Made by a program: the position numbers and the translations under genes
From: Hemiscyllium ocellatum
Taxonomy: Eukaryota
NCBI RefSeq assembly: GCF_020745735.1
Contig: NW_026867526.1
Span: 908,416 to 972,415 of the forward strand
Direction: 5' to 3'
DNA length: 64,000 bases
Notes under the pieces: model-generated
What the model was told of the DNA's origin: nothing
Seen by the model: only the letters and a program-made list of their open reading frames with translations
Databases searched by the model: none
In this document: piece after piece, positions 2,777 to 61,600 of the stretch
Numbering within the stretch: position 1 is the first letter of the stretch
Layout of the letters: the number at the start of each line of letters is the position of its first letter

Positions 2777-2904
2777 CTTCACCAGAGTGACGGCAGCGCT
2801 GTAGAAAATACTCAGGAAGAACAAGGTGATGAACGTGGAAGCAGTTGTCCAGATGTTGCTGTTATCATCGTCATAGTCTTCAATCCAAGTGCGATCTATT
2901 GAAT
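2777..2904 (-). CDS. IGHM: IgM TM1 exon (extracellular spacer plus transmembrane helix)
   Basis: Encodes (D)SIDRTWIEDYDDDNSNIWTTASTFITLFFLSIFYSAAVTLVK with the conserved antigen-receptor TM pattern. Acceptor ttcatag| at 2905; donor AAG|gtgaga at 2776. Confidence 0.95.
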
Positions 2905-5633
2905 CTATGAATATAAAGCCGAGAGAATGCATTTAGATCGTTTATTGATCCAGATCGATCTATGTGCATCCAAGTCATGTAATTAGAGACCATTACATCT
3001 TCATAAAGCAGTCAGGTATTTCTCAAGTGTGACTCTTATCTGTATCCATCAGTGCATTATTGACTCTCAGCAAGAAATTACAAATACGAACTGCACATGT
3101 TCTTTCTTCATTGTCCATGTCAGAACGTTTTAAATTATTTTTCTTTTAATCTATTATTTAAGGATATTATTATTTGAGGAATGCTTATTACAAATGATTA
3201 TTTTAATTATATCATTATATTTTAAATTTAGGCTGTGACAGCACTTTAGTTGAAAATTGTGGCCATCACTGAATAAAAGTTCAAATGTGATTCTCACCTT
3301 TATGTATTGGTGACCAATTGCTTGGCAAATCGTGAATATAAGTGACATCACAGTCAGGACATTGCTTCACATTTTTGTTTGTAGGATCTGTATATTTAGG
3401 AATAAGTTTTTGTACATGTGTCCCTTAATTTATTTGACCTACTGCTTGGTGTGTTTGGTTTCCCTTTAATGTTTGTGTATGTGGTTATGAGAGTCTCTTC
3501 CTTCACTCTTGCCCATGTTGGAGTCTGTGCATGAATAAACATATTCCTGTTCCTTTACTGCTGGTGTGCTCATGTGTTTGGGCACCGAAATTTTGGTCTG
3601 TTCACATTGTGTAAGCATCATCATGCTAATATGCCATTTTGTTGCTGCCTATGCTTATCTTGTAATGTCTTTGTGAGTGTTCACTTTTCATTAGTGCTAT
3701 CTAAAATGTGTGCTTATGTGTCTGTTTCAGGTCCTACCTAAACGAGGTTATTTTCATGGTGATGCTTAATAAATGTTAGCATGCAATGTTATGTTTTGAT
3801 GGATGTTTATATTTATATGACGATGTTTGCTTGTGTGGCAATCTTTCCCAAACCATCTCCTGAGAAGCTTGTTTGTGTTACTGTGTGTGGATGCTTGCTG
3901 ATGCTTGTGCCCATTCTCCTTATTTAATAAACGCCCCCCTATTTGTTGATCTATGCACTTGTGTGTCTGCATGTGAGACTCTGAATTTGTGTGTACGTGT
4001 GACATTGTATACATGCTGATCAATGTGGTTTAAAAATAACTAATTAAGCTGCCTCTGTCATCATATATTTGTGATTCTGAAAATGGGAAAATAATGATAT
4101 TAATATTTATCTCTGTGCACTTACGTGCCTGTATGAGTTGACATGTGGGAGGACATTTTTCGGAATTTGTATCTGTGTGTTCATGCGTGTATGTCTGTAC
4201 GCATTGTGCTGTATGAATGTATATGTATTCATGCCCATTTGAGTGTTACCGTGTGTCTATATTTCTCATGGTTATGTGTGAGTACCCCTGTTCATTTGTG
4301 CAAATAATTTTCTTTCGGTGTATGTGAGTTTTTGTATGAGCTTAGGTGGGTGTTCAAGTACCACTTGCATGTGTGGCTCTGTGCGAGTATGCGTGTGTGA
4401 CATCTTATCTATATGCACATTTGAGTGTGCACATAAATATGTGTCTTTAGGTGAGAGCCCATATATGTGTCATTACGTGTGTATTTGCGATCATCTCTCT
4501 GTATCTGTTCTTATACCAGACTGCAATTTTTATTATACTATTTTATTGTTCTAATTTTAATGGATTGCCCATAATTAGATTTGACCTTGGTGTTGTAGGA
4601 AACATTTCCCATCGTCGTGGAGAGATAAGCGTTTTATGAGCAACTCTTCTGTTGCAGTGATAGAATTGCTGTCTCTGAGAGAAAAGGTGTGAGTTCAAAT
4701 CCCCACTGCCCCAGAGATAACATTTCTGAATATGTTTATTAGAAAATGTCTACTTGTGTTCTGTATGTGAAACAAAATGATATCAGGTATTCGAATACCA
4801 GAATTGATCCCATGTGCTCCAGAAAACTGAGACAAAACTATGGAATTCAAGCCGGGACGATGCAAACACCAGTTTTGGATTATGGGAATCGATGTTAATC
4901 ATTTGTTAACAGAGCCAAGCGTGTCCAACATGTTTCAAAGGTATTATTTTGCAAGGAAATGTTCAATCTTTGGACAGTAAGCAAGGAGCTGACTGTTCCT
5001 GTTAGTAACGGGGTTACATTACAGAGGACATCGACCATGAAAACTCTGCACAGGGAGCAAGAGGACAGACCATTCATCGTTCCCCTCCCCTCTGCTCCAC
5101 GACAACTTATCTGTCGATTCTCTTTGGTGTGAAAGTGAAGATACATTCTGTCAACTCATGCGCTGGCGCAAGATCCCTGGCAGTTCCCCAGAAACAAAGG
5201 TTACATTCAAACTGTTCTGCCCTCTTTACGATTGGTATGTTCCAATCAAATTTAATTTTAAAGTGTCTTAAATTTACATTTCCAATTGGTGCAATGTGGC
5301 AGTTGAAAACTGACATGAATTTTGTAAGAATGTCCAATGGGGGGAATCAAGAACACCAAGTTCAAACCTCGTGCTCTACCCTTGACATAAAATGGACAGT
5401 GTCAGATTTTGTCACAGAGGGACTAAAGATGGATAAGGGACTTGGTGGAATCCTGCAATGAGTGAGCTTTACTCTGTCTCTGACCCAGGGTGTATCTGAG
5501 CAGAGAACATTAACTGCACAAGACCCTTGTCCTAGACCTGTTAATTATCCACTTTAACTACACCGATGTAATGTAAGTCAGAGTGAGAAACAACTAATTC
5601 AGTATTTACCTCACAACTGGAGGGAAAAGAAAC

Positions 5634-5675: not shown

Positions 5676-6067
5676 TTATTGACATGAATTAACAGTGTCC
5701 ATCAGTGCAAGTGAAATGTTTACGAAACTCGGTTTACCGCTGGATTTATCGACTGTTCTGTTGATGATCTTCAATGGAATCGCTTCATGTCCCGCCACAC
5801 AGGAGTAAGAAGCACCGCTGGCCCACTCCTCCGCTGTAATGGATAACAGGCTGTAGATGAAGAAGGAAGTGTTGTCACTCTCCGCCATCACCTCGGTGTT
5901 CTTGTAGTTACTGGGATTCACCGGCTTGTCATTGTTTGTCCACTTGACGAAGATCTCTCGGGGGGAGAAACCTCTCACTAAACAGGTGAGGGAGAGAAAC
6001 CTCTGAGCGGAGATTTCTTCTGTTGGTGGCAGGAGGACCGACACTGATGGCTCCAGCGGATTAATCA
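5676..6067 (-). CDS. IGHM: IgM CH4 exon plus secretory tailpiece (internal donor after 5738 for the membrane form)
   Basis: (V)[74 protein letters not shown]: C1-set Cys/Trp/Cys, tailpiece with NIS sequon and penultimate Cys. Acceptor ctgcag| at 6068; internal donor AGC G|gtaaac at 5737. Confidence 0.97.
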
Positions 6068-6522: not shown

Positions 6523-6831
6523 CTTTCTCCTTGTGGATGGAGTCTCTCAGTGGAGTCGGTAGATTCTGATGGTACACCACACATTCAAAAGTAACGCCAC
6601 TCAGCCAGGCTTCAGTAGAAATGTCTAATTTGCTGATCACGCTGTCGGGATTCTGTCCAGGCTGGTCAGCAATCTCGGATTTCAGAGGCTTCTTTTCTTG
6701 TTTCCAGGTCACGTTGACTCCAGAAGGAAGATTGGACACAACGCAGGTTAACGTCACCGTCGCCTCCAGTAAGACTTGTTCTACTGGCGGTGGGAGGATT
6801 TTAACGGTGTGTGGGTGGCACTCGGTATCTT
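6523..6831 (-). CDS. IGHM: IgM CH3 exon
   Basis: (E)[57 protein letters not shown]; 309 bp; acceptor tttcatag|, donor G|gtgag. Confidence 0.96.
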
Positions 6832-8797: not shown

Positions 8798-9109
8798 CCT
8801 GGAGTGCGGTGATGTTTTTACTTTGAATGTTGTCTTCATGAGTGACCTGGCAGGTATAGACTGCGCTGTTGTACCATTCACCATAAGGGACTATCAGCCG
8901 ACTCGTCACCGAGAAGTTCCCGTTCGCCTCACACACGGGAGACGTGAAGAAGCCAGAATCCAAGAGTCGGCCATTTTTCAACCAACTCACGGAGATTGAC
9001 TTCGGATGGAAATCGATGATTGAACAGACAATGGTTGCAAACTTGCTGCTTGCGATTTCTTCACTGGAGCTCACAGTTAGGAGAAGAGTTGGTGGGAGAG
9101 GACCTGTAC
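8798..9109 (-). CDS. IGHM: IgM CH2 exon
   Basis: (G)[71 protein letters not shown]; 312 bp; acceptor cctaaag|, donor G|gtaag. Confidence 0.96.
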
Positions 9110-12201: not shown

Positions 12202-12510
12202 CACATGGCATTTCTTTGCTCTTGTGTGAGTGTGACCCGCTGTGTTCAACCTCACAGTAGATTTTGCTGGGGCAATCTACCGCTGACCCGGGCAGGGTTA
12301 ACTGGCTGCTCAGGGTGTAGGTTCCCTTCTTGTTTCTCACTGATGGGTAAGTCTTCAATCCATCCGTGATTAGCTCCCCACCTTTCTTCCAGGTTACCTT
12401 GGTGACGTCAGGGGAATAGTCCATCACCAAACAACCAAAGATTGTCGAATCGGTGTTGTGCTCCTCACAGGAGGAGACCAGGCCATAAAGCGTGGGGGAA
12501 GATGGTGTCT
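12202..12510 (-). CDS. IGHM: IgM CH1 exon
   Basis: (E)[72 protein letters not shown]; 309 bp; acceptor ctattgtag|, donor G|gtacgt; phase matches the J trailing G. Confidence 0.96.
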
Positions 12511-20325: not shown

Positions 20326-22652
20326 TGCGAGTTCATGAGTGGATTACTTTAATTAATTCGAAATTTGGCCTTGGTCACATAACTCACTATAGCAGTTGTT
20401 TCCGGAAGAATGACTCTTCAGTTGATATTTTGTTGTAAAATGTAATTATTTATTTAAAATGCACAGATTGGGAACACCTAAAGTACTGTGCAGGTTAAAT
20501 AATTCAGTTAATGTTTTATTTTTATCCTGCAAATCCATTTTAATCAGGGACATAACAATTAATTAACTCAAGTTATGTGTGAAACTGATCAAAGCAGTGA
20601 AACTGATCTGTTCTTCATAGAATTGAGCAGAATTTCCAAACGGTCTTTGCCAATGATATTTTCCAGCCTGAAAAATATGTATGTCGTGTACAGAGGAATT
20701 GAAAGGTGTTTCTTGATCAATTATAGCACAGTCATGGCATTTTTGCTCAAGAGCAAGAACTATTAGAACATTAGACTTTTGAAATTCTATTTATATTTCT
20801 CTTTGACTTGTAAACTGTTTAAAAACAGACGGTGTGATTGAACTAGATAGTTGAGTTTTGAATTTGGATTGTAAAGCATGGATTAGATTAATCCTTAATT
20901 ATTTATTTTAAGTAAAAATGGCGCCTGAAGGTATCTGTTTTCCCTTCATTTCTAAAACCTTTGCGATTTGCCTTTCACTTAATAATAGACTCTATGAAAT
21001 TTTAACTCGCATGCTGATTGCACTGAATGAGGAAAGAGCAGTTCACTGTCACCAACCGTGTTAACATTGCAAAAACAATGTAGAAACCAGAAACAGTTTC
21101 CCAAATATAACACATTTAATGTTACCCAAGCACAGTCCCTCCTCAACAGATCAACGATCACCAGATCACAACACGGTGTGTTTGCAGCAGAACTAGCTCT
21201 GCAAACATTTTCAACAGAACCAAGAACATGATGTAACCTCACAAAAAAACCAAATTGAAGTCTAACAAAGCTGCTCAAAATCAAGCAATCTAGTGATTAA
21301 ATTGAATAGAAATAACAGGTCATAACAGCAACCTTGTTGGTGAGGGGACTTAACACTTAAAACTGTAACGTTTCTGGCAATCGTTCAATTTACTTCCAAC
21401 CTGCACACCCTTCCTGATCATGACAATCTTGTGCAGTGCACAGGAGAGTGGGGTTGAAGGCATATATTGATTAATCACTTCATGGTCAAAGCAAAATTAC
21501 TGAATGGACAAATATTACCACATTATAATTTTAAGTTAGTTTCAATTATGTAATCTGATCAATTCTGCAGTTTCAGATTTTAGTCCCAAATTTTATTTTG
21601 AATGAGGCTACTCAAAACAAAATTCAGTTAGTTTACAATTAGAACTGAGTTTTTTTAAAAAGTCAATGCATTAAAAACTCATTTTTTTTCATTTCTCACA
21701 CTTCCGGGTTTCTGCCTTAAGTTGTTTTTCAGACCGTTACAAATAGATGTAATGTTTTCAATCAAGCAGAGAAAAATGTGTCATATAAGTTTAACAAATG
21801 CAGAAATGATTCATGGAAAACAAAAGAACTTCACAAATATTGGTAATGAAAAGTATTCCAGAGAGTCAATCTCCTCACCAGAAAGAAAACACCAATTCAG
21901 AAAGCATGAAAACGCAGATCAATTTCACAAACTGAATAAGAATCCAATCAACTCAATTCAACAGAATCCAGGAAAATAAAATCAGAATCCAATCAACTCA
22001 AAACAACAGATTTGAATGAAACATCATCAGAATCCAACCAATTCAATTCAACAGAATCAAATAAAACCATTTCAAAAGCCAATCAACACAATTCAACAGA
22101 ATCAAGTAAAAACAAAGTCAGAATCTAATCAACAGAATGCAATATAGCACCTCAAGAAACTTTTATGACAGATTCTAACCTGCTTGTCATCAACAAAATT
22201 AACAAAATAAATTAGAAAATATAATCATGGTAAGAACACATATTCAGGAAATGAATAATGATATTTTAGCATATTTTAGTCATGTTTGGTAATATCTTGA
22301 ACATCTTTGAATTCTTAGGGTTTGTTGTTGAATATAAAACTCACAGTCAGGGTGTCACTGGCATTAAATATTATTTATAGCTGACTGATTAAGAGACATT
22401 AGGTGTTTCAAGTAACCCAGCCACATAGAATGTCCATCTGATTAAAAAAAAAGAGATACACCGAGCAACTGACTCCATCATCACCATTTTAACCATTTGC
22501 TGAGCCTTAACTGAAGTCTATAATCAGTCTGAACAAAACTCAATCCGAACCAAACCAAACTCAGCACAGAATCTGAGCTTCATTTAATTCAGAAATTAGT
22601 CACATGAATAGAAAGTTTTTAAAAAGTCACTAAGCAAGTTCAAAGTTCTTAC

Positions 22653-22700
22653 CTGAAGTCACTGTCACCATGGTCCCTTGGCCCCAGTAATCAAGATAGT
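22653..22700 (-). CDS. IGHJ: JH gene segment (YLDYWGQGTMVTVTS)
   Basis: WGQG motif, splice donor TCA G|gtaag at 22652, immediately preceded by a 23-bp RSS. Confidence 0.97.
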
Positions 22701-22739
22701 CACAGTGTTACATTCTCTGGACTGGGTTGCACAATAACT
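22701..22739 (+). other. JH recombination signal: CACAGTG - 23 bp - ACAATAACT
   Basis: Heptamer 22701-22707, spacer 22708-22730 (23 bp), nonamer 22731-22739. Confidence 0.95.
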
Positions 22740-23066
22740 AGCTCTGCATAAAACAATTCAAAAATCTACCATCATTTTAAATTTTCAGAACCACAGGCAA
22801 AACAAAGTCACGATAAATCTTCATCACATAATTGCGCTAGTGAATTCTGATCATTCTTGATAAATTTTAATACTGTTTTATACTTCACAGAGTAACACAT
22901 GAGCTGATTCTCAAAATTCCCAACTGGTGTATCAATAATTACCCAACCCTTTTACAAATTAAATCGTGATACTGGCATAAAACCCCACAGAACTAATGCT
23001 GCACTGCAAGTTAAGACGGTTTGTAGAAGTAATCACTGACTAGTTTCAAACAATGGAGGCTGAATA

Positions 23067-23094
23067 GGTTTTTGTATTGATCATAATTGCAGTG
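23067..23094 (-). other. D segment 3' RSS: CACTGCA - 12 bp - ACAAAAACC
   Basis: Perfect nonamer (plus ggtttttgt 23067-23075), 12-bp spacer, variant heptamer (plus tgcagtg 23088-23094). Confidence 0.85.
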
Positions 23095-23109
23095 TCACCC
23101 CAGTTATAT
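23095..23109 (-). CDS. DH gene segment (15 bp, ATATAACTGGGGTGA), D2-type with 12/12 RSSs
   Basis: Short segment flanked on both sides by 12-bp-spacer RSSs, lying between V and J. Confidence 0.9.
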
Positions 23110-23137
23110 CACTGTGAGACACGTTGTGTCAAATACT
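23110..23137 (+). other. D segment 5' RSS: CACTGTG - 12 bp - TCAAATACT
   Basis: Heptamer 23110-23116, spacer 23117-23128, nonamer 23129-23137 (6/9 match to consensus). Confidence 0.85.
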
Positions 23138-23440
23138 ATGACAGACTGTAAACTGTAAAATGCAAATAATTTCTTCACTTCCCAGAAAGCAGTGATTCAG
23201 ACTCCTCTAAAAATGATTTGGTGCATTATTTCAGCTTTTACTATTCATTGTATTTTGAAAGCTTGGAATACTTTTCCAGGTTTGGTCTGCATTTAACTTG
23301 ACAATCAACACGAAGAAGGTAGAAAATAATTCTACATTTGTACAAACTAGCCCGACTGGATTGTGTTTAAATTGCATCTCACATTATTTCTCGCTCCTGC
23401 CACGGTAGAAATCACCAATTTGAGATAAATCCTTGTCAGT

Positions 23441-23478
23441 GGTTATTGTATGAGGATGTCGCTGTGCACTGCACTGTG
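23441..23478 (-). other. RSS downstream of V(-D1): CACAGTG - 22 bp - ACAATAACC
   Basis: Heptamer plus cactgtg 23472-23478, spacer 23450-23471 (22 bp), nonamer plus ggttattgt 23441-23449. Confidence 0.9.
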
Positions 23479-23795
23479 ACCCACTGTGTCTGTTGCACAG
23501 TAATAGATGGCGGTGTCTTCGATCTTCAGGTTAGTCATGTCCAACGAGAAAATGTTGTTTGAAGTGTCTTTGGACGCAGTAAATCGACCCTGAATCGCTG
23601 GTGCATAGTAATTGCTGCTGGATGAACTATAGTAGCTAACCAGCCACTCCAGACCCTGGCCGGGAACCTGGCGGACCCAGTACATCCAGTCACTGCTGAG
23701 ATCGAACCCGCTGGTTTTACAGGTCAGTTTCAGGCTGCCGTCGGGACGGCCAGTCTCTGCCTCTGGCTGGGTCAAAACAATCTCCGACTGGACAC
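23479..23795 (-). CDS. IGHV: VH exon (end of leader plus V domain), ending in an extra 9-10 nt interpreted as a joined D1 remnant
   Basis: (C)[105 protein letters not shown]; canonical Cys/Trp/YYC and no stops; acceptor tttttcaaag| at 23796. Confidence 0.97.
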
Positions 23796-23923
23796 CTTTG
23801 AAAAAGACAAGAAATAAACCATGAGCATTAATGCAGATGAAATGATGCCTGAGTCTTTTACATTCCTGAGGTAGACTAACATTGAGACAGTAACAAAGAC
23901 AGACTTGAACAAAAAACACTCAC

Positions 23924-23972
23924 ATGATAAGAAAGTCAGTAATAAACTGAGAAAAATTGTCGACACAATCAT
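23924..23972 (-). CDS. IGHV: VH leader exon (MIVSTIFLSLLLTFLS + T)
   Basis: Hydrophobic signal peptide, 49 bp, donor T|gtgagt; 128-bp intron; T+GT gives Cys in frame with VQS-EIVLTQ. Confidence 0.95.
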
Positions 23973-36329: not shown

Positions 36330-39300
36330 GAACCTCTCCCACAAGGGAAACAACATTTCTGCATTTACACCATCAAGTTTCCTGAAAATAATAGATGTTT
36401 CAGAATGTCACCACTGAATCTTCTATGTTCTAATGAGTATAGGCCCAAACGACTCAGTCTCTACTCTCAAGACAGACCCTCCATCCTCAGGATCAGTCGG
36501 CTAAACCTCGTGTGGATTGTCTCACAGTCCAGTGTACCTTTTCTTTGTGATAAGAGTCCCAAGAACAGTCCACAGTATTCCAGCTGTGGTAAAAATACAG
36601 CTTCTTTTCAGTTTAAACAAACATTATAGTCATACAGATATCAGGCACAGAAACAGACCCTTCGGTCCAACTGCACTGACCAGATATCCCAACCTGACTG
36701 AGTACCATTTGCCAGACATTTGGCCTATCTTTCTCTAAATGTTACCTGTTCATACACCCATCCAGGTGCCTTTTAAATGCAGTAATTGAACCCACCTCCA
36801 CCACTACCACTGGCAGCTGTTTCCATACATACACGTGAAAAGGTTACCCCTCAGGTTCTTTTCAAACGTTTCTCCTCTCACCTTAATCTGCTGTCCTCTA
36901 GTTTTGGACTCTCCCACTCGAGGAAAAAGGCCTTGGCTATTCACCATATCAATGCCCTGCATGGTTTTATAGGTCTTGTTCAGGCCACTCCTCAGCCTCC
37001 TTTCCTCTCACTTTAGGGAAAAGAAAAGCCCCAGTCTATTCAGCTTCACCTTATACCTTAAACACTCCAATTCCAGCATCATTCTTGGAAATCTTTTCTA
37101 CATCCCCTCAAGTTTCACAAAATCCTTCATCGAAATGGTCAGCCAGATTTGTCTGTAATAATTCTAAACGTGGCCTCACAAATGTCCTGTACAACTGAGA
37201 CATGGCATCGCGACTCCTACACTTAATGTTATGACCAATGAAGGAAAGCGTGCCAAACACCTTCTTCCCCACCCTGTCTACCTGCAACTCCACTTTCAAG
37301 GAATGATGCATCTGCACCCTTTGGTTTCTTTGCTCAGCAACACTCCCCAAGGGCCAGCCATTAATTGTATAAGTCTTGCCCTGGTTTGCCTTACAAAAAT
37401 GCAGCACCTCACATTTATTTAATAAAGCTTGGGTTCATGAAAGGCAGGTCATGTTTAACTGATTAATTGGAATTCTTTGAGGTCATAATGAGCGTGGTAG
37501 ACCATGGGGAACTGGTGAACGTGGTGTATCTGGATTTCCAAAAGGCATTCAGCAAGGTGCTGCACAAAAGGCTGCTGCATAAGATAAAGATGCACAGTGT
37601 TACGGGCAATGCATTAGCATGGACAGAAAACTGGTTAACTAACAGAATGCAAAACGTGGGGATAAATGGGTGTTTTTCTGGTTGGCAATCAGTGGCGAGT
37701 GGTGTGTCTCAGGGATGAGTGTTGGCACTGCAATTGTTTACAATTCAGGTAGATTGCTTCGAGTTAGAGATCCAAGTGTAGTGTGTTGTAGTTCGCAGAA
37801 GGCACTTAAATGAGTGATAGAGCAAAGTGTGCAGGAGGATATAGATAGGTTAAGTGAGTGGGCAAGAGTCTGGCAGATGGAGTACAATGTTAGTAAACGT
37901 GAGGTCATCCATTTTGGTAGGCATAATAACAAACAGAATGCTGCTGTGCAGGGGGACTTGGGTGTTCTTGTGCATGAAACACAAAAGTATGGTTTGCAGG
38001 TACAGTAGCTAATTAGGAAGACAAATGGAATAATGTCCTTCATTGGCTGTGGATAGAGTTTAAAATTAGGACTTTCTGTTGCAGCTGTATAGGGCGCTGG
38101 TGTGACCATGCCTGAAGTATTCTGTACACTTTTCATCACCTTACATGAGATGACACTGGGGTGGGGCTTGCTGAGGAGGTTGATTACGTTGATTCTGGAA
38201 ATGAGGGGGTTGGCTTGTGAGGAGAGATTGAGCAGACTGGGAGTATACTCATTGGAATTCAGAAGAATGTGGGAGGGGGGTTGTAAAATTATAAATGGGA
38301 TAGATAAGACAGAAGCAGGGATGCTATTTCCACTGGTGGGTGAAATTAGAATGACGGGGCATAACATTAAAATAAGGGAAACAGATTTAGGACTGAGTTG
38401 AGGATCAACATCTTCACCCAAAGGGTTGTGAAGCTGTGGAATCCCCTGCCTAGTGAAGCAGCTGAGGCCAACTTGTTGAATGTTTTAAAGTTGAAAATAG
38501 ATTTTTTTAACAGTAAAGGAATGAAGGGTTATAGTGAGCGGGTGGGTAAGTGGAATCTTAGTCCATTGAAAGATGATCCATGATGTTATTGAAAGGCAGA
38601 GCAGACTCATGGGGTCAGATGGCCTGCTCCTGATCGTATTTCTAATGTTTGGATGTTATGTTCTAACAGGCCTCCCATCCAAAACGTAATGCTCTCTGAC
38701 TACTAAGTAAAAACTGAAAGAACTGTGGATGCTGTGTATCAGAAACAAAAACGGAAACTGCTGGAAATGTTCAGAAGGTCTGGCAGCATCTCTGGTGTGA
38801 AAGGCTCACCAGTTTATGGTTCCCTGGCTTTTCCATACAACTTTCTTCAATATTGCTGCCTCATTAGTCACTCTCCAGTCTTCTGGCATCTCATCTATGA
38901 TTATCAATGATACAAATATCTCAGCAAGGGGTCCACGAATCTCTTCCCTAGCTTCCCACAAAGTTCTGAGAAAACCTAACCAGGTCTCCAGGATTTATTT
39001 CCATTTTGCTACTGTAAGACCTCCAACACCTCCTCTTCTGTAAGATGAACTCATTTTAAGATCACATTATTTGTTTCCCAAGTTCCTTAGCTTCTATGCT
39101 CCTGTCTACTGTAAATATTGATACAAAATATTTGCTTAGTGTCTCAGCCATCTCCTGTGGTTCCATGTATGGAAAGCCATGTTGATCTTTAAGGGCTGTA
39201 TTCTCTCCTTAGTTATTCTTTTAAACTTAAAATAATTTTAGAATCTTTTCAGATCTCCTTAATTCTATTTGCCAAAGCAATTTCATGCCCCCTTTTTTCC

Positions 39301-43006: not shown

Positions 43007-46000
43007 GATTTATATCAGACAGACAGAGATTGGCGTCAGTGTCTGTGGGGCTGGTTTATATCAGACAGGCAGAGATTGGCGTCAGTGTCTGTGGGGCTGG
43101 TTTATATCAGACAGGCAGAGATTGGCGTCAGTGTCTGTGGGACTGGTTTATATCAGACAGGCAGAGCTGAAAAATGTGTTGCTGGAAAAGCGGGGCAGGT
43201 CAGGCAGCATCCAAAGAGCAGGAGAATCGACGTTTCGGGCATGAGCCCTTCTTCAGGAATGAGGAAAGTGTGTCCAGCAGGCTAAGATAAAAGGTAGGGA
43301 GGAGGGACTTGGGGGAGGGGTGTTGGAAATGCGATAGGTGGAAGGAGGTCAAGGTGATGGTGACAGGCTGGAGTGGGGGTGGGGGTGGAGAGGTCAGCAA
43401 GAAGATTGCAGGTTAGGAAGGCGGTGTTGAGTTCAAGGGATTTGACTGAGACAAGGTGGGGGCAGGGGAAATGAGGAAGCTGGAGAAATCTAGTTTCATC
43501 CCTTGTGGTTGGAGGGTTACTAGGCAGAAGATGAGGCGCTCTTCCTCCAGCCGTCGTGTTGCTATGGTCTGGCGATGGAGGAGTCCAAGGACCTGCATGT
43601 CCTTGGTGGAGTGGGAGGGGGAGTTGAAGTGTTGAACCACGGGGTGGTTGGGTTGCTTAGTCCGGGTGTCCCAGAGGTGTTCCCTGAAATGTTCCGCAAG
43701 TAGGCAGCCTGTCTCCCCATCATTGGGGGAAGAGCGCCTCATCTTCCGCCTCGGAACCCTCCAACCACAAGGGATGAACCTAGATTTCTCCAGCTTCCTC
43801 ATTTCCTCCACCTTGTCTCAGTCAAATCCCTTGAACTCAGCACCGCCTTCCTAACCTGCAATCTTCTTCCTGACCTCTCCGCCCCCACTCCCACTCCGGC
43901 CTATCACCCTCACCTTGACCTCCTTCCACCCATCGCATTTCCAACGCGCCTCCCCCAAGTCCCTCCTTCCTGCCTTTTATCTTAGCCTGCTGGACACACT
44001 TTCCTCATTCCTGAAGAAGGGCTCATGCCCGAAACGTCGATTCTCCTGCTCTTTGGATGCTGCCTGACCTGCTGCGCTTTTCCAGCAACACATTTTCAGC
44101 TCTGATCTCCACCATCTGCAGTCCTCACTTTCACCTATCAGACAGGCAGAGATTGGCGTCAGTGTCTGTGGGGCTGGTTTATATCAGACTGGGGGAGATT
44201 GGTGTTAGTGACTGTGGGGCTGGTTTATATCAGACTGGGGGAGATTGGTGTCAGTGTCTGTGGGGCTAGTTTATATCAGACTGGGGGAGATTGGTATCAG
44301 TGACTGTGGGGCTAGTTTATATCAGACTGGGGGAGATTGGTGTCAGTGACTGTGGGGCTGGTTTATATCAGACTGGGGGAGATTGGTGTCAGTGACTGTG
44401 GGGATGGTTTATATCAGACTGGGGGAGATTGGTGTTAGTGTCTGTGGGGCTGGTTTATATCAGACTGGGGGAGATTGGTGTCAGTGTCTGTGTGGCTGGT
44501 TTATATCAGACAGAGGGAGATTGGTGTTAGTGACTGTGGGACTGGTTTATATCAGACTGGGGGAGATTGGTGTTAGTGACCGTGGGGCTGGTTTATATCA
44601 GACTGGGGGAGATTGGTGTTAGTGACTGTGGGGCTGGTTTATATCAGACTGGGGGAGATTGGTGTTAGTGACTGTGGGGCTGGTTTATATCAGACTGGGG
44701 GAGATTGGTGTCAGTGACTGTGGGGCTGGTTTATATCAGACTGGGGGAGATTGGTGTTAGTGACTGTGGGGCTGGTTTATATCAGACAGAGGGAGATTGG
44801 TGTTAGTGACTGTGGGGCTGGTTTATATCAGACTGGGGGAGATTGGTGTTCGTGACTGTGGGGCTGGTTTATATCAGACTGGGGGAGATTGGTGTCAGTG
44901 TCTGTGGGGCTGGTTTATATCAGACTGGGGGAGATTGGTGTTAGTGACGGTGGGGCTGGTTTATATCAAACTGGGGGAGATTGGTGTTAGTGACGGTGGG
45001 GCTGGTTTATATCAAACTGGGGGAGATTGGTGTTAGTGTCTGTGGGGCTAGTTTATATCAGACTGGGGGAGATTGGTGTCGGTGACTGTGGGGCTGGTTT
45101 ATATCAGACTGGGCGAGATTGGTGTCAGTGACTGTGGGGCTGGTTTATATCAGACTGGGGGAGATTGGTGTTAGTGACTGTGGGGCTGGTTTATATCAGA
45201 CTGGGGGAGATTGGTGTTAGTGTCTGTGGGGCTGGTTTATATCAGACTGGGGGAGATTGGTGTTAGTGACTGTGGGGCTGGTTTATATCAGACTGGAGGA
45301 GATTGGTGTTAGTGTCTGTGGGGCTGGTTTATATCAGACTGGGGGAGATTGGTGTTAGTGACGGTGGGGCTGGTTTATATCAGACTGGGGGAGATTGGTG
45401 TTAGTGTCTGTGGGGCTAGTTTATATCAGACTGGGGGAGATTGGTGTTAGTGTCTGTGGGGCTGGTTTATATCAGACTGGGGGAGATTGGTATTAGTGAC
45501 TGTGGGGCTGGTTTATATCAGACTGGGGGAGATTGGTATTAGTGACTGTGGGGCTGGTTTATATCAGACTTGGGGAGATTGGTATTAGTGACTGTGGGGC
45601 TGGTTTATATCAGACTGGGGGAGATTGGTGTTAGTGACTGTGGGGATGGTTTATATCAGACTGGGGGAGATTGGTGTTAGTGTCTGTGGGGCTGGTTTAT
45701 ATCAGACTGGGGGAGATTGGTGTTAGTGACTGTGGGACTGGTTTATATCAGACTGGGGGAGATTGGTATTAGTGACTGTGGGGCTGGTTTATATCAAACT
45801 GGGGGAGATTGGTGTTAGTGACTGTGGGGCTGTTTTATATCAGACTGGGGGAGATTGGTGTCAGTGTCTGTGGGGCTGGTTTATATCAGACTGGGGGAGA
45901 TTGGTTTTAGTGACTGTGACGCTGGTTTATATCAGACTGGGGGAGATTGGTGTTAGTGACTGTGGGGCTGGTTTATATCAGACTGGGGGAGATTGGTGTT

Positions 46001-46215
46001 AGTGACTGTGGGGCTGGTTTATATCAGACTGGAGGAGATTGGTGTTAATGTCTGTGGGGCTGGTTTATATCAGACTGGTGGAGATTGGTGTTAGTGACTG
46101 TGGGGCTGGTTTATATCAGACAGGGGGAGATTGGTGTTAGTGTCTGTGGGGCTGGTTTATATCAGACTGGGGGAGATTGGTGTTAGTGTCTGTGGGGCTG
46201 GTTTATATCAGACTG
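43007..46215 (+). repeat. 46-bp minisatellite (CAGACTGGGGGAGATTGGTGTTAGTGACTGTGGGGCTGGTTTATAT), ~3.5 copies at 43007-43166 and ~45 copies at 44136-46215
   Basis: Direct reading of the tandem units; degenerate copies continue to ~46345; the array is interrupted by a Penelope-like insertion. Confidence 0.95.
43167..44135. mobile_element. Penelope-like element insertion with inverted structure (minus arm ~43167-43728, plus arm ~43729-44135)
   Basis: Minus ORF 43413-43811 'EHFREHLWDTRTKQPNHPVVQHFNSPSHS..RRLEEERLIF' (GIY-YIG C-part), an inverted second copy of the 3' end, and flanking 16-bp direct repeats tatcagacaggcagag (43151-43166, 44136-44151). Confidence 0.85.
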
Positions 46216-47719
46216 AAGGAAAATGTTGTCACTGTCTGTGGGACAGGGTGAAATCAGACATGGGGAGATTTGTGTCTGTGGGGTGGTTGATATTCGACAG
46301 GGGGTGATTGGTGTCAGTGATCGAGGGGCTGGTTTATATCTGACAGGAGGAGTTTGGTGAGGACGTTATAAAGCCAGAAGAGGATCACTTCATGCTTTAA
46401 TTCTCTTTCAAGGCATACTGGGCACTCAAGGGTTAAACATTCCACTGTGAAACAGATTCACTACAGTATCAATTACAGAATAGACAGAACATCTCAGTAG
46501 GATAACTGAATCTTCGAGAAGGAATCCATTGCAGCCACACATGTGGATTCCTCTGCAGCCTCAGGCAACGGTATTTGTCCTCCCCAGCCCAGACTGATAG
46601 CCTTGGCCGCAACCCTGTTAAACTGCCTCCTGCTCCCATTATCTTGCTTCCTCTCCATATTAGCATAGGGATGTGAATTCCCCATTGAAAACAGGCAAAA
46701 CCCTTCAGTTTTAATCTCTTCCCATTGATACATGATCATGAAGAATACGATAATCAGTCGTTATTGCAGGCCATCGACATTCACCGGACCTTGTAAAATT
46801 ATAATTGCCCATCTTAAACAATGTAACGACAGTCAACCATGTGGATTATAGACCTTTTGTATCACCACAAGTAGACACACAACTACTTTCAGGGACATGG
46901 AGAATCCCGCGCTGCACTCCGATAATAAAGCATCTGCTGTTGTACTGAAACTTGTGTCGTCTGGATTTGTGGAACAAAATATAGATTAACAGCCTCACAA
47001 CTCTATGTTTGACTTTTCATTTTCAATCAGGAAGTGTCTGCTTCGCCTTCCCATATCTAACAAACCATCAGATTTCATCTCTGCAGCCTCAGATCCTCTC
47101 TGTAACCACAAATAAACACTGAGTGATGAAGATATTTAGCAGGTGCAGAAGCATCTGCAGAGAGTGAGAACAGAGTTCAAACCCAGGTCTGACCGTGTGT
47201 CAGAATAAAGCTCAATCTTGTGGCACTGCCACATTGACAATTGTTAGTGCCAACACCTCAATCAAAGTCTCTTCATTGTCCTGTTGTTTATCGAATGGCA
47301 GTGGTCTACAGTGCAGAACAAGTCCCTTCAGCCCATTGATTCTGTGCCAGTCATAAACAACCATCAAACTATGGTAACCTCATTTCTCAGCCCTCGGCCC
47401 ATCACCTTGTATAAGGTAAAAACAAGGACTGCAGATGCTGGAAACCAGAGTCTAGATTAGAGTGGGGCTGGAAAAGCCCAGCAAGTCAGGCAGCATCCAA
47501 GGAGCAGGAAAATTGACGTTTCGGGCAAACAGGACAGACTACAGATTCAAAAACACCAGCAACGGTTCTCCTTCAAGACCCATCACCTTGTGTGTCTTGG
47601 CATTGCAAGTGCACATCTGAATACTTCTTCAATGATTTGAGAGCTTCTGTCTGTAATGCCCTTCCGGCAGTGAATTCAGTTTCTCACCACCCTCTGGGTG
47701 AAAGCCTTTTTCCTTCATT

Positions 47720-53900: not shown

Positions 53901-56900
53901 GCTCAATTTCTATCATGTCTGAAATTACCATGAAGGCCGCAACTTCTCAACCTCGCCCCTCACCTGAGGCATGTGACCCACCAGTCCTCTCTCTCTGACA
54001 AGACAGCAGCTCCCGGGTCCTCCTGGTCTATAATAACTTCCTAACTTTAAAAAGGCACTCCAGTAAGAGAGCTCTTTACATGGTTCAGGTCAAAATCTTG
54101 GAGTTCCCTCCCTAACATCAACGTGGGACACCAAGGGCTATAGCAGGAGAATACAGCTCACCCCCACCTTCCAGGCAACTGGATGGTGTGGTAATCTCAT
54201 GCAAGTGAAATTTGCAAGTAACTTTTATTACAAGGTGACGGTGGATGGTCACTAAGACTGTTTCTTTCCCTCTGTTTAAATCAGCGTAACAGGGAACCAA
54301 AGGATGGGGTGAAAATGACAGTGATAGCGCTTCGTAGGTTGGTGTTTGTTTGAGATTGCATCGTCGCTATGAATGTTTGAACACTTATTCAAGGGCATGC
54401 AGTTAGCTGCCAGAGGATATGGTGGGGGCTGGTACAATTGCGACATTTAAAAGGCATCAGGATGAATATGTGAATAGGAAGGGTTTAGAGGGATATCAGC
54501 CAAGTGCTAGCAAATGGAACTAAATTAAGTTGGATATCTGGTTGGCATGAATAAGTTGGGCCGAAGGGTCTGTTTCCATGCTGTGCATCTCTCTGAATAG
54601 ATTGTTGCAAAGTTTCAGACAAGGCTTGGATTGTGTGTCTCTCTCATGCTTTCTCAGAATCTGCAAATGCAATGTCTCCATATTTCCACAAAACATTAAG
54701 AAAGAGAAAAAAACGGTCAGTACTGAGGGAGTGCCACACCGTTGGAGGGTCAGTGATACGTTAGTATTGTACTGTCAGAGGATCTGTACTGAAGAAAAGC
54801 TGCACTGTCGGATTGTCAATACTGAAGGATTCCTGTACTGTCAGAGGGTCAGTTAGGATGGAGTGCTGCCCTGTCAGAGGGTCAATACTGAGGGAGTGCT
54901 GCACTGTCAGAGGGTCAGTACTGAGGGAGTGCTGCACTGTCAGAAGATCAATACTGAGGGAGTGTTGCACTGTCGGAGCGTCAGTACTGAGGGAGTGCTG
55001 CACTGTCAGAGGGTCAGTACTGAAGGATTCCTGTACTGTCAGAGGGTCAGTACTGAGTGTGTGCTTCACTGTTAGAGGGTCAGTACCGAGGGAGTGCTGC
55101 ACTGTTAGAGGGTCAGTACCGAGGGAGTGCTGCACTGTTAGAGGGTCAGTACTGAGGGAGTGTTGCACTGTCGGAGCGTCAGTACTGAGGGAGTGCTGCA
55201 CTGTCAGAGGGTCAGTACTGAGGGAGTGTTGCACTGTCGGAGCGTCAGTACTGAGGGAGTGCTGCACTGTCAGAGGGTCAGTACTGAGGGAGTGCTGCAC
55301 TGTCGGAGGGTCAGTACTGAGGGCGTTCTACACTGTCAGAATGTCAGTACTGAGGGAGTGCTGCACTGTCAGAGGGTCAGTACTGAGTGTGTGCTTCACT
55401 GTTAGAGGGTCAGTACCGAGGGAGTGCTGCACTGTTAGAGGGTCAGTACCGAGGGAGTGCTGTACTGCCAGGGAGTCAGTGCTTAGGCAGTGCTGCACTG
55501 TGAAAGGGTCAGCAATGAGGGAGTGTTGCACTGTCATTATGCAGTGAGCACTCCACTGTCAGAGGGTCATTACTGAGGGAGTGCCACTCTGTGGAGAGTG
55601 AGTACTAAGTTAATATTGCACAGTCGGAGGATCAGTATTGAGGCAAACCTGCACTGTCAGAGGATCAGTACTGGGGCGCGCAACACTGCTGGACCGTCAG
55701 TACTGAGGGAGTGCTGCACTGTCAAAGGGTCAGAACAAAATGAGCACTGCACTGTTGCAAGGTCATTACTGTGGGAGCACAACACTATCAGAGCATAAGT
55801 ACTGAGGGAGCACTACATTGTCAGAGGAACAGTATTGAGGGATTGCCATCCTGTTAGAGGTGCTGTAGTGAGGGAGTGCAATACTGTCAAAGGGTCAATA
55901 CAGAGGGAGTGCAATACTGTCAAAGGGTCAGTGCTGAGGAGGCGCTGCACTGTCAGAGGGTCAGTACTGAGTGAGTGCTGCACTGTCAGAGGGTCAGTAC
56001 TGAGTGAGTGCTGCACTGTTAGAGGGTCAGTACAGTGGATCCGTTGGAATGTCAGAGGGTCAGAATGGATGGAATACTGCACTGTCAGAGTTTCATTACA
56101 GCACAGTGCCGTACTGTCAGAGTGTCACTACTGGAGGAGTGCTGCTCTGACAGAGGGGCAGTACTGAGAGAGTGTCACACTGTCAGAGGAACAGTACTGA
56201 GAGAGTGTCACACTGTCAGAGGGTCAGTACTGAGGGAATGCTGCATTGAAATGGGTGCAGGACCGAGGGATTGCCGCACTGTCAGAGTGGCAGTACTGAG
56301 GGAGTTCTAAACTGTCAGAGGATTAGTACTGAGTGTGTGCTGCAACGTCAGAGGGTCAGTACTGAGGGAGTGCTGCACTGTTGGAAGGTCAGTCCTGAGG
56401 AAGTGCTGCGCTGTGGGAGGACCAGTACAGATGGAGTGCAGCACTATGGAAGGTCAGTACTGAGTTAATATTGAACAGTCAGAGGGTCAGTACTGAGGGA
56501 GTAGCACACTGTCAGGGAGTGAGTCATGAGGGAGTGCCACACTGTTGGAGGGTCAGTACTGAGGAAGTGCTGTGCTGTGGGAGGACCAGTACAGAGGGAG
56601 TGCAGCACTATGGAAGGTCAGTACTGAGTTAATATTGAACAGTCAGAGGGTCAGTATTGAGGGAGTAGCACACTGTCAGGGAGTGAGTCATGAGGGAGTG
56701 CCACACTGTTGGAGGGTCAGTACTGTGGGTGCATCGGAATGTCGGAGGGTCAGAATGGAGGGAATACCATACTGTCAGAGTTTCATGACAGTGTAGTGCC
56801 GCACTGTCAGAGAGTCACGACTGGGGGAGTGCTGCACTGTCAGAGGGTCAGTACTGAGAGAGTGTCACACTGTCAGAGGGTCATTACAGAGGGAGTGCTG

Positions 56901-58859
56901 CACTGTCAGAGGGTCAGCACTGAGAGTGTCACACTATCAGAGGGTCATTACAGAGGGAGTGCTGCACTGTCAGAGGGTCAGTACTGAGGGAATGTTGCAC
57001 TGTCAGAGGGTCAGTACTGAGGGAGTGCTGCACTGTTGAAGGGTCAGTACTGAGGGAGTGCTGCACTGTCGAAAGGTCAGTACTGAGTGCGTTCTGCACT
57101 GTCAGAATGTCAGCACTAAGGGAATGCCGCACTGTCGGAAGGTCAGCACCGAGGGAGGTCCACATTGTCTGAGGGTCTTCACTGAATGAGTACTGCAATA
57201 TCAGTGGGTCAGTACTCAGGGAAAGCTGCACTGTCAAAGGTTCTTTAATGGAAGAGTGCTGCACTATCAGCGGGTTAATACCAAGGGAGTGCTGCAATGT
57301 CAGAGGGTCAGTACTGACGGAGTGCTGCAACATGAGAGGGTCAGTACTGAGGGAGCACTCCACTGTCAGAGGGTCTGTACTGAGGGAGCACTATACTGTG
57401 AGAGAGTCAGTACCGAGCGAATGCTGCACTGTCAGAGAGTCAGTACTGAGGGAGTGCTGCACTGTCAGAGGGTCAGTACTGAGGGAGTGCTGCACTGTCA
57501 GGGGGTCAGTACTGAGGGAGTGATGCACTGTCTGAGTGTCTGTCCCATGGAAAGGCCACACTGTCAGAGGTCAGTAATGAGGGAGGACCACACTGTCAGG
57601 GGGTCATTACTGAGTGAGTGCTGTGCTGTCAGAGGGTCAGTACTGAGGGAGTGCTGCACTGTCAGGGGGTCATTACTGAGTGAGTGCTGTACTGTCAGAG
57701 GTTCAGTACTGAGTGAGTGCTGCACTGTCAGAGGGTCAGTACTGAGTGAGTGCTGTACTGTCAGAGGGTCAGTACTGAGGGAATGCACACTGTCAGAGGG
57801 TCAGTACTGAGAGAGTGCTGTACTGTCAGAGGGTCAGCACTGAGGGAGTGCTGTACTGTCAGAGGGTCAGTACTGAGGGAGTGCTGTACTGTCAGAGAGT
57901 TAGTAATGAGGGAGTATCACAATGTCACAGGGTCAGTACAGGGGGAGTGCCACACTGTCGGAGGGTCTCTACTGATGGAGCACTGTACTGTCAGAAGATC
58001 AGTACTGAGGGTGCACTATATTGCCAACGGGTCGGCACCAAGTGAGCGCTGCAACGTGACAGGGTCAGTATTGAGAGCATGCTGCGCTGTCAGAGGGTCT
58101 GGACTGAGGGATCGCTATAGTGTCAGAGGGTCTGGACTGAGGGAGCGCTGCACTGTCTGAGTGTCAGTCCCAGGGGAAGGCCACACTGTCAGAGCGTCAG
58201 TAATGTTGGAGTACCGCGCAGTCGGTAAGTCGGTAATGAGGGAGTACCACATTGTCAGTGGATCAGTCCTGAGGGTGTGCTACACTGAGAGAGGGTCAGT
58301 ACAAAACGAGCACTGCACTTTTGGAGGGCCATTACTCAGGGAGAACAACACTGTTGGAGAGTCAGTGCTGAAGGAGTGCTGCACTGTCAGAGAGTCAGCA
58401 CTGAGAGAGTGCTGCACTGTCAGAGGGTCAGTACTGAGGGAGTGCTGCACTGTCAGAGGGTCAGTACTGACGGTGTGCTGCATTGCCCAAGGGAGAGTAC
58501 TGATGAAACTCCTCACTGTTGGAGGTTCAGAACTGAAGGAGTGCTGCACTATCAGAGGCTCCGTACTGTGGGAGTGTTAAACTGTCAGAGGGTCAGTCCT
58601 GAGGCAGCACCACACTGTCAGTGGGTAAGTGCTGAGGGAGTGTCGCACTGTCGGAGGGTCTGTTCTGCGGGAGCACCACACTGTGAGAGGGTCAGTACTG
58701 AGGGTGTGCTGCATTGCCAGAGGGTTCAGTACTGAGGGAAACCTCACTGTCAGAGGGTCTTTACTCGAAGATTGTTGCACTGCCACATGGTAAGTACCGA
58801 GGGAGTACTGCAATGTCAAACAGTCAGTACTGAGGGAGTGCTGCAACGTGAGAGCGTTT

Positions 58860-59175
58860 TTTAGATTAGATTAGACTTACAGTGTGGAAACAGGCCCTTC
58901 GGCCCAACAAGTCCACACCGACCCGCCGAAGCGCAACCCACCCATACACCCCTTTTACCCCTTACCTAACACTATGGGCAATTTAGCTTGGCCAATTCAC
59001 CTGACCCGCACATCTTTGTGACTGTGGGAGGAAACCGGAGCACCCGGAGGAAACCCACGCAGACACGGGGAGAACGTGCAAACTCCACACAGTCAGTCGC
59101 CTGAGTCGGGAATTGAACCCGGGTCTGCAGGCGCTGTGAGGCAGCAGTGCTAACCACTGTGCCACCGTGCCGCCC
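58860..59175 (-). mobile_element. Full-length HE1-like tRNA-derived SINE inserted in the satellite
   Basis: Minus strand begins GGGCGGCACGGTGGCACAGTGGTTAGCACTGC (A box), has GGTTCAATTCC (B box), and ends in (TCTAA)n. Confidence 0.9.
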
Positions 59176-61290
59176 CTAATACTGAGGGAATGCTGCGCTG
59201 TTAGATGGTCAGTGCTGAGGGACCACTCCAATGTCAGAGATTTTGTACTGAGGGAGCGGTTTACTCTCAGAGGGTCAGTACTGAGGCAGTGCTGCACTGT
59301 TGAAGGGTCAGTACTATGGAAGTGCTGACTCTTGGAGGGTTAATCGTGTGGGAGTGGGATACTGTCAGAGGGTCAGTATTGAGAGTGTGGCACACTATTG
59401 GAGAGTCAATACTCAGGGAGCACCACGCAATCAAAGGGTCAGTACGGAGACAGTGCCTCACTGTTGGAGTGTCAGTACTGAGAGAGTCCCTCACTGTCAG
59501 AGGGTCAGTATGGGGCAGTGCCGCATTGTCACTGACTTTCCAAAATGTGGCACACCCTCAGTCCTGATCCTCTGACAGATCACCATGCACTCAGTGCTGA
59601 GGGAGTGCCACACTTTTGGAAAGACAGTATTGAGGGAGTGGTGCACAGCCAGAGGGTCAGTACAAAGGATGTGCCAAACTATCGGAGGTGAGTACTAAGG
59701 GAGCACTGCACTGTCAAAGGGTGAGAAGTGAGGCAATGCACACTGTCAGTGGGTCAGTACTGAGGGAGCACCACATTGCCAGAGGATCAGTATTGAGGGA
59801 ATGTTACACTGTCAGAGGTCAGTATTGAGGGAGTGCTGCACTGTCAGAGGGTCAGCACAGAGGGAGTGCTGCACTGTCAGAGGGCCGTACAGAGGGGCTG
59901 CTTCATTGTCGGAGAGTCGCACAGAGGAAATGCTGCACTGTCGGAGGGTCATACGGAGGTTTGTACTGAGGGAGTGTCACACTGTCAGAGATTAAGTCCT
60001 CAATGAATGCTACCTTCTCAGAGGGTCAGTACTGAGGGTGCATTGCACCATCAGAGGGTCAGTACTGAGGGACCGCTACACTGCCAGAGTGATAGTACTG
60101 AGGGAGTACTGTACTTTCAAAGGTTCAGTACTGAGGGAGTGCTGCACTGTCAGAGGTGTAGGACAGAGGGAGCTGCCGCACTGTCAGTGTCAGTACAGAT
60201 GGAATGCCGCACTGTTGGAGTGTCAGCACTGAGGGACAGTGGCATTGTCAGGAGTTTAGTACTGAGGGAGGGCCGCACTGTCAGGAGTTTAGTACTGAGG
60301 GAGGCCGCACTGTCAGGAGTTTAGTACTGAGGGAGGGCACCACTGTCAGGAGTTTAGTACTGAGGGAGGGCCGCACTGTCAGGAGTTTAGTACTGAGGGA
60401 GGGCCGCACTGTCAGGAGTTTAGTACTGAGGGAGGACCGCACTGTCAGGAGTTTAGTTCTGAGGTAGAGCTGCACTGTCAGAAGTTTAGTACTGAGGGAG
60501 GGCACCACTGTCAGGAGTTTAGTTCTGAGGGAGGGCCGCACTGTCAGGAGTTTAGTACTGAGGGAGGGCACCACTGTCAGGAGTTTAGTACTGAGGGAGG
60601 GCCGCACTGTCAGGAGTTTAGTACTGAGGGAGGTTCGCACTGTCAGGAATTTAGTACTGAGGTAGGTCCGCACTGTCAGCAGTTTAGTACTGAGGGAATG
60701 CTGCACTGTCAGGAGTTTAGTACTGAGGGAGGGCCACACTGTCAGGAGTTTAGTTCTGAGGGAGGGCCACACTGTCAGGAGTTTAGTTCTGAGGGAGGGC
60801 CGCACTGTCAGGAGTTTAGTACTGAGGGAGGTTCGTACTGTCAGGAATTTAGTACTGAGGTAGGTCCGCACTGTCAGCAGTTTAGTACTGAGGGAATGCT
60901 GCACTGTCAGGAGTTTAGTACTGAGGGAGGGCCACACTGTCAGGAGTTTAGTTCTGAGGGAGGGCCACACTGTCAGGAGTTTAGTTCTGAGGGAGGGCCA
61001 CACTGTCAGGAGTTTAGTACTGAGGGAGGTTCGCACTGTCAAGAGTTTAGTACTGAGGGAGAGCCACACTGTCAGGGGTTTAGTACTGAGGGAGGACGGC
61101 ACTGTCAGGAGTTTAGTTCTGAGGTAGAGCTGCACTGTCAGAAGTTTAGTACTGAGGTAGGTCCGCACTGTCAGCAGTTTAGTACTGAGGGAATGCTGCA
61201 CTGTCAGGAGTTTAGTACTGAGGGAGGGCCACACTGTCAGGAGTTTAGTTCTGAGGGAGGGCCGCACTGTCAGGAGTTTAGTACTGAGGG

Positions 61291-61600
61291 ATTAGATTAG
61301 ATTTACAGTGTGGAAACAGGCCCTTCGGCCCAACAAGTCCACACCGACCCGCCGAAGCGAAACCCACCCATACCCCTACATTTACCCCTTACCTAACACT
61401 ACGGGCAATTTAGCATGGCCAATTCACCTGACCCGCACATCTTTGGACTGTGGGAGGAAACCGGAGCACCCGGAGGAGACCCACGCAGACACGGGGAGAA
61501 CGTGCAAACTCCACACAGTCAGTCACCTGAGTCGGGAATTGAACCCGGGTCTCAGGTGCTGTGAGGCAGCAGTGCTAACCATTGTGCCACCATGCCGCCC
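61291..61600 (-). mobile_element. Full-length HE1-like SINE inserted in the type-B satellite
   Basis: Near-identical to 58860-59175, with A/B boxes and a (TCTAA)n tail. Confidence 0.9.

Follow-up and report, generated by a model that had tools for sequence, protein, structure and literature searches.

A Hemiscyllium ocellatum IgM cluster with V joined to D1 and with D2 and J still separate, a probable germline VD1-D2-J gene

We analyzed a 64,000-nucleotide stretch of Hemiscyllium ocellatum DNA (NCBI RefSeq assembly GCF_020745735.1, contig NW_026867526.1, positions 908,416 to 972,415 of the forward strand), hereafter the window, with all positions counted from its first base. This analysis revealed an IgM heavy-chain cluster in which the variable (V) segment abuts the remains of a first diversity segment (D1), and in which a second diversity segment (D2) and the joining (J) segment each stand apart with their own recombination signal sequences (RSSs). 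Comparison with relatives that are still split at this point leads us to read it as a germline, recombination-competent VD1-D2-J cluster, with a probability of roughly 80%. The same arrangement had been proposed in a preliminary description made from the letters of the window and a list of its open reading frames (ORFs), and several of the results below bear on its claims.

V, the D1 remnant, D2 and J share a single orientation over the V-to-J span (23795-22653), and their RSSs are consistent with the 12/23 rule. The layout that the preliminary description had reported was read directly from the window: the end of V, a CACAGTG heptamer with a 22-bp spacer, a D segment flanked on both sides by RSSs with 12-bp spacers, and a J segment with a 23-bp RSS, with about 300 bp from the D1 RSS to D2 and about 330 bp from D2 to J. 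It had also stated that the V-J interval contains no further RSS pair, and our RSS scan of this interval found none. The VH exon is recognized as a Pfam V-set domain (E 1.1e-17), is preceded by a leader intron of 128 bp, and is 85% identical to a VH of Chiloscyllium punctatum, 79% to one of Scyliorhinus and 78% to an IgM VH of Heterodontus (horned shark). Its first complementarity-determining region reads SSDWMY. The fused VD1 frame is open, reading CATDTVG without a stop up to the RSS.

For the RSS scan, both strands of the 64 kb were searched for a heptamer starting with CAC and a spacer of 12, 22 or 23 bp, at a score of at least 13/16. The scan returned four RSS-like sites, three of which fall within 850 bp between V and J, compared with a mean of 0.87 such sites per window in block-shuffled sequence. 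The weaker 5' RSS of D2 was validated by its conservation in relatives. The fourth site (37593-37631) has no V beside it and was rejected as a chance match inside a long interspersed nuclear element (LINE) reverse-transcriptase fragment.

The evidence that carries the reading comes from the clusters encoding the closest VH proteins in the C. punctatum assembly GCA_003427335.1. Two of these, L001 (BEZZ01001580.1) and L004, are unjoined between V and D1, and the other two, L002 (BEZZ01001741.1) and L003 (BEZZ01002062.1), are VDD-J. In L001, the V end ...GCA AGA GAC is followed by CACAGTG-23-TCAAAAACA; about 400 bp past this V RSS come a D1 5' heptamer, CATTGTG, a 14-nucleotide D1, ATACTACAGTGGGT, and then CACAGTG-22-ACAAAAACC. 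L004 follows the same plan, with D1 reading ATGCGACAGCGGGT and a D1 3' RSS of CACAGTG-22-ACAATAACC, whose nonamer is identical to that of the window. The D1 segments of both end in ACAG(T/C)GGGT, and 19 of the 22 bases of the D1 3' RSS spacer are common to the window and its relatives.

Aligned by BLAST, the window matches these split clusters in two blocks. Window positions 24368-23482 align to L001 2614-3490 on the V side at 87.7% identity, and positions 23487-23101 align to L001 3917-4304, comprising the D1 tail, the D1 3' RSS and the D1-D2 interval, at 92.3%; for L004, the V side is 90.8% identical to the window and the side from D1 onward 92.5%. Between the blocks, the window is without 433 bp of L001 (3484-3916) or 358 bp of L004 (3481-3838), and this missing DNA coincides exactly with the V RSS, the DNA between V and D1, the 5' RSS of D1 and that segment's first 5 nucleotides. 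No copy of the relatives' V-D1 interval was found anywhere in the window. Further along, the D2-to-J stretch matches that of L004 at 96% identity, and there are no differences in D2, in either of its RSSs or in J. Because the DNA missing relative to the split clusters runs from the V RSS to the 5' end of D1, we assign the 22-bp RSS (heptamer 23478-23472, spacer 23471-23450, nonamer 23449-23441) and the nine bases preceding it to D1, which makes the layout VD1-D2-J. As in other joined clusters, the RSS pair and the DNA between its members are gone by comparison with split relatives, and the coding ends abut. The preliminary description had suggested that the 22-bp RSS was that of D1 and that the V 23-RSS, the V-D1 interval and the D1 5' RSS had been deleted; L001 and L004 carry exactly those elements, and these relatives from another assembly show the few hundred extra bp at the junction that it had predicted for an unjoined paralogue of the same species.

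Table 1. Features of the IgM cluster in the window, in order of transcription.
Feature	Position	Strand	Remarks
TATA box, TATAAA	24060..24065	minus	95 bp upstream of the start codon; distance to framework region 1 as in C. punctatum L001 and L004
Leader exon 1, MIVSTIFLSLLLTFLS plus 1 nucleotide	23924..23972	minus	GT donor at 23923; matches the leader of C. punctatum protein P0001
V exon, end of leader and VH	23488..23795	minus	terminal codons TAT TAC TGT GCA ACA GAC
D1 remnant, ACAGTGGGT	23479..23487	minus	fused in frame to V, reads T-V-G; equals the last 9 nucleotides of L001 D1
D1 3' RSS, CACAGTG-22-ACAATAACC	23441..23478	minus	homologous to the D1 3' RSS of L001 and L004, with equal spacer length
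D1-D2 intersegment DNA	23138..23440	minus	inside the stretch aligned to L001 (92.3%) and L004 (92.5%)
D2 5' RSS, CACTGTG-12-TCAAATACT in RSS orientation	23110..23137	minus	identical in L001 and L004
D2 coding segment, ATATAACTGGGGTGA, 15 nucleotides	23095..23109	minus	identical in L004
D2 3' RSS, CACTGCA-12-ACAAAAACC	23067..23094	minus	unusual heptamer CACTGCA kept in L002, L003 and L004
J RSS, nonamer AGTTATTGT-23-CACTGTG	22701..22739	minus	conserved in L001 and L004
JH coding segment, YLDYWGQGTMVTVTS	22653..22700	minus	GT donor at 22652; identical in L004
Cmu1 exon	12202..12510	minus	open, AG/GT splice sites; Pfam C1-set, E 1.8e-15
Cmu2 exon	8798..9109	minus	open, AG/GT splice sites; Pfam C1-set, E 4.9e-18
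Cmu3 exon	6523..6831	minus	open, AG/GT splice sites; Pfam C1-set, E 3e-11
Cmu4 exon and mu-type secretory tail	5676..6067	minus	Pfam C1-set, E 3.3e-21; internal GGTAAA donor for the membrane form
Transmembrane exon TM1, ...NIWTTASTFITLFFLSIFYSAAVTLVK	2777..2904	minus	open

All signals for the remaining joins are intact and conserved, the unusual D2 3' heptamer CACTGCA included. Since the RSS layout obeys the 12/23 rule, the cluster should still be recombination-competent: the 22-bp RSS on the 3' side of D1 would pair with the 12-bp RSS on the 5' side of D2, and the 12-bp RSS on the 3' side of D2 with the 23-bp RSS of J. D2 could not be skipped, nor VD1 joined directly to J, because a 22-to-23 join is disallowed. 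Two joins, one fewer than in a split cluster, would then suffice to form a VDDJ exon, and either could come first, as happens in the nurse shark (PMC2435157). The third complementarity-determining region (CDR3) would open with a fixed, N-free C-A-T-D-T-V-G derived from GCAACAGACACAGTG, subject to trimming at the 3' end of D1, and its diversity would come from the D1-D2 and D2-J junctions only, that of the V-D1 junction being lost. The two joins (22 to 12 and 12 to 23) and the CATDTVG start of CDR3 had both been anticipated in the preliminary description, and the RSS layout and the open VD1 frame agree with them.

The IgM minilocus in the window is complete, extends over about 21 kb and has open exons throughout, up to and including TM1. 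This bears out the earlier statement that all exons are open, for which the leader, V, Cmu1-4 and TM1 were checked; Pfam recognizes one V-set and four C1-set domains. The parts expected of a cartilaginous-fish IgM minilocus are all present, namely a leader and a V-set VH, a V-D-J region with 12/23 RSSs, and its own Cmu1-4 with secretory tail and transmembrane exon. Cmu4 is 89% identical to a C. punctatum fragment. A BLAST search of the V-to-J region against all 64 kb detected no second V and no paralogous cluster. The J-Cmu intron contains, about 0.5 kb past J, a 45-bp A-rich tandem repeat of 4.4 copies (21935-22133), which is also repeated in L001.

Several points weigh against a germline, recombination-competent cluster. 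We infer the germline status of the joined DNA from assembly sequence, and VD-D-J also arises often as a somatic intermediate in the lymphocytes of sharks, above all in thymocytes (PMC2435157). The comparators come from the assembly of a related species and, at 88-96% identity, are not demonstrably orthologous. The missing DNA is flanked by a 6-bp direct repeat, ACAGTG, one copy of which belongs to the V heptamer and the other to D1, so that a deletion independent of RAG is possible. The D2 3' heptamer is non-consensus, albeit conserved, and no transcripts were detected from the H chain genes that the horned shark carries in germline-joined form (PMC2193156). Finally, no canonical immunoglobulin octamer (ATGCAAAT or its complement, with at most one mismatch) was found within the 1.2 kb preceding the leader. 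The octamer is likewise absent upstream of the leaders of L001 and L004, where only the TATA box is conserved, and because these two relatives share the absence, it says nothing about the window cluster.

Whether the cluster is used is a question separate from its layout. It is possible, if on balance unlikely, that the cluster, although structurally intact, is silent and adds little if anything to the repertoire, having arisen neutrally as a side product of RAG activity in germ cells. The horned-shark genes without detected transcripts, whose significance has been doubted (PMC2193156), point in this direction, as does our failure to find a transcript-derived protein more than 85% identical to the window V. 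Against silence stand the intact state of every exon, splice site and RSS, the in-frame fusion of V to D1, and reports that germline-joined genes can be favored early in life (PMC4279169; PMC2193156). That VD-D-J clusters form a maintained, expressed sub-family in this shark rather than neutral accidents strikes us as considerably more doubtful still. If it were so, B cells would have a head start, with two joins to make, a fixed CATDTVG stem and a bias in the early-life repertoire, and would keep two diversifying junctions. More speculatively, the perfect CACAGTG that the V/D1 joint creates might serve as a cryptic heptamer for the removal of D1 in secondary rearrangements.

We then consider how the joint arose. 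Its bases can all be accounted for by an untrimmed V and a D1 shortened by 5 nucleotides, with neither N nor P bases. The first CACAGTG (23488-23482) is made up of the last V base, C, and the ACAGTG of D1; there is no nonamer 12 or 23 bp past it, the real nonamer lying 32 bp off. On this reading the upstream CACAGTG, a composite of the last C of V and the interior of D1 with no nonamer at the proper spacing, is not an RSS heptamer. The repeat within it makes window positions 23487-23482 align twice in L001, to the V heptamer (3485-3490) and to the interior of D1 (3917-3922).

The repeat is also the basis for a RAG-independent origin, in which microhomology-mediated deletion or replication slippage would have removed 360-430 bp between the V heptamer CACAGTG and the (T)ACAGTG in D1, and the first 'heptamer' would be V's own. 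The position of the junction within the 6-bp direct repeat and the lack of N and P bases are what such an event would leave. However, ...GAC precedes the heptamer or joint in three relatives (L001, L004 and the joined L003), and with that V end recombination within the repeat predicts GAC-C-ACAGTG, one C more than is observed, so that this route requires an ancestor with a V shorter by 1 nucleotide. A RAG joint with V untrimmed and D1 minus 5 nucleotides predicts GAC+ACAGTGGGT exactly. The joined forms in C. punctatum further suggest a general RAG-type process. Since the GAC end yields the observed sequence in one case and one C too many in the other, a RAG-type joint appears favored over microhomology deletion by roughly three to one, and we regard the RAG-independent origin as unlikely.

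Under a RAG-type joint, an ancestor of the form V(23)-(12)D1(22)-(12)D2(12)-(23)J would have lost everything from the V RSS through the fifth nucleotide of D1. The 9 remaining D1 nucleotides would thereby have come to follow the untrimmed V end (...GAC) directly and in frame, with nothing inserted. The likeliest cause would be RAG-type joining of the V and D1 coding ends in the germ line, with no TdT involved; alternatively, the cluster may have arisen by duplication from an already joined ancestor. Trimmed ends and little sign of TdT activity characterize germline joints (PMC2193156), a pattern which the window joint, with 5 nucleotides trimmed and no N bases, fits.

A less probable alternative, which we consider improbable, is that the join is somatic, that is, that DNA of lymphocytes or thymocytes carrying a first-rearrangement (1R) VD-D-J intermediate was assembled and that the true germline form is V-D1-D2-J. 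In the nurse shark, 1R VD-D-J products are indeed common, and thymocytes have most of their immunoglobulin heavy-chain (IgH) loci in a partly rearranged state (PMC2435157). Yet somatic joints usually carry N bases (PMC2193156), of which the window joint has none. Each cell makes its own joints, and a B cell rearranges no more than one or a few of its loci (PMC2435157), so that a somatic joint should escape consensus assembly and is unlikely to have become fixed in it. In addition, joined VDD-J clusters (L002 and L003) are present in the independent assembly of C. punctatum, and the whale shark protein P0009 represents a fully joined VDJ. The weakest alternative, a native single-D cluster V(22)-(12)D(12)-(23)J with a duplicated V heptamer, obeys the 12/23 rule by layout alone and resembles a tetrapod-style V-D-J unit, but it is contradicted by the two-D relatives to the point of being hardly credible: the 22-bp RSS, together with the 9 preceding nucleotides and about 380 bp on its far side, is homologous to the D1 region of those clusters (D1, the D1 3' RSS and the D1-D2 interval). 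It shows no homology to their V RSS, whose 23-bp spacer differs and whose nonamer is TCAAAAACA. The preliminary description had named this same layout, with a 22-bp V RSS, as the finding that would count against it, and the homology of D1 and the D1-D2 interval to L001 and L004 excludes it.

Pre-joined shark immunoglobulin genes have a long history. Kokubu et al. reportedly described, in 1988, IgM clusters of Heterodontus francisci joined in the germline as VD-J and VDJ, and this horned-shark work is said to have described D1 spacers of 12/22 as well. The window cluster resembles these joined IgM clusters in that RSS-flanked segments are fused in genomic DNA, the D1 3' spacer is 22 bp and the remainder is intact. 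Clusters partly or fully joined in the germline through germ-cell RAG activity are now known from cartilaginous fish (PMC5192425; PMC4279169; PMC2193156), and reviews distinguish the classes VD-J, VD-DJ and VDJ (PMC5192425; PMC4279169). In contrast to the horned-shark clusters and the review classes, the window has only V and D1 joined, with D2 and J both free (VD-D-J), and this one-step form is not among the germline configurations listed in the two reviews (PMC5192425; PMC4279169).

The somatic 1R VD-D-J product of the nurse shark, where joins are unordered (Malecek et al. 2008, PMC2435157), has the same topology as the window. It differs in being somatic and specific to each cell, with joints that generally carry probable N stretches (PMC2193156), whereas the window joint is N-free and present in an assembly. 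In the open full-text literature, with subscription papers outside this coverage, we found no description of a germline VD-D-J, and only the nurse-shark somatic intermediate. Among light chains, the joined NS4 genes of the nurse shark (Lee et al. 2000, PMC2193156) are nested among closely related split genes, and their joints are trimmed, with little or no N addition and no RSS remnant, and are ascribed to germ-cell RAG, features that the window cluster would share on the favored reading. NS4, however, encodes a light chain and needed just one join, of V to J, and its germline status was shown by experiment and phylogeny, whereas that of the window cluster is probable. As far as the account of them cited in PMC2193156 goes, chicken VH pseudogenes likewise have V and D fused in the germline; they serve as gene-conversion donors without RSSs, leaders or a J and C of their own, in contrast to the complete and rearrangeable gene of the window.

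Further counterparts are the VDD-J clusters of C. punctatum. L002 and L003 have the V family, the D2 3' RSS and the J RSS of the window, and their V is likewise fused to D1-derived bases without an RSS. In both (L002:4670-4730 and L003:3445-3510), V runs into D1-/D2-derived bases, followed by the D2 3' RSS CACTGCA-12-nonamer, and J is separate. They thus stand one step beyond the window, with D1 and D2 fused too and only the J join left. A whale shark (Rhincodon typus) protein, P0009, annotated as 'Ig heavy chain V region', reads ...YYCARDWGGSLHYWGQETMVTVTA, a fully joined VDJ.

The window cluster is a rarely described configuration within the long-known class of pre-joined shark immunoglobulin genes. 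It adds a documented one-step VD-D-J to their catalog, with split relatives that show exactly which bases were removed. If the joint is germline, it supports the action of germ-cell RAG on IgH miniloci in no fixed order, and the cluster would constitute a natural, semi-preformed receptor that is traceable by its fixed CDR3 stem. The current picture remains unchanged, as the class of joined clusters has been known for decades.

The split relatives have peculiarities of their own. L001 is without about 195 bp that are present in both the window and L004 (L001:4285-4320 versus window 23101-22905). This DNA comprises the 3' part of D2, the D2 3' RSS and the sequence that follows, and its loss makes a D2-to-J join impossible by the 12/23 rule; it reflects either a crippled cluster or an assembly deletion. 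L004, the closest split relative of the window cluster, has a degenerate V heptamer, CGCAGCG, at 3481-3487, and its annotated V protein (P0019) leaves frame in framework region 3, so that L004 may be a pseudogene or contain sequencing errors.

Outside the IgM cluster, the window contains large satellite arrays and retroelement fragments. A G-rich satellite with a 33-bp unit and higher orders of 66, 99 and 197 bp occupies about 7.4 kb (54715-62145), and a 46-bp satellite unit is repeated about 48 times at 44136-46359, while a short array related to it occupies 43009-43166. Retroelement fragments include a reverse-transcriptase-like ORF at about 37.4-37.6 kb and an endonuclease/reverse-transcriptase-like ORF at 62544-63548. 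Among such fragments lie repeated ORFs containing 'QHFNSPSHST', at 69-314 and 43413-43811.

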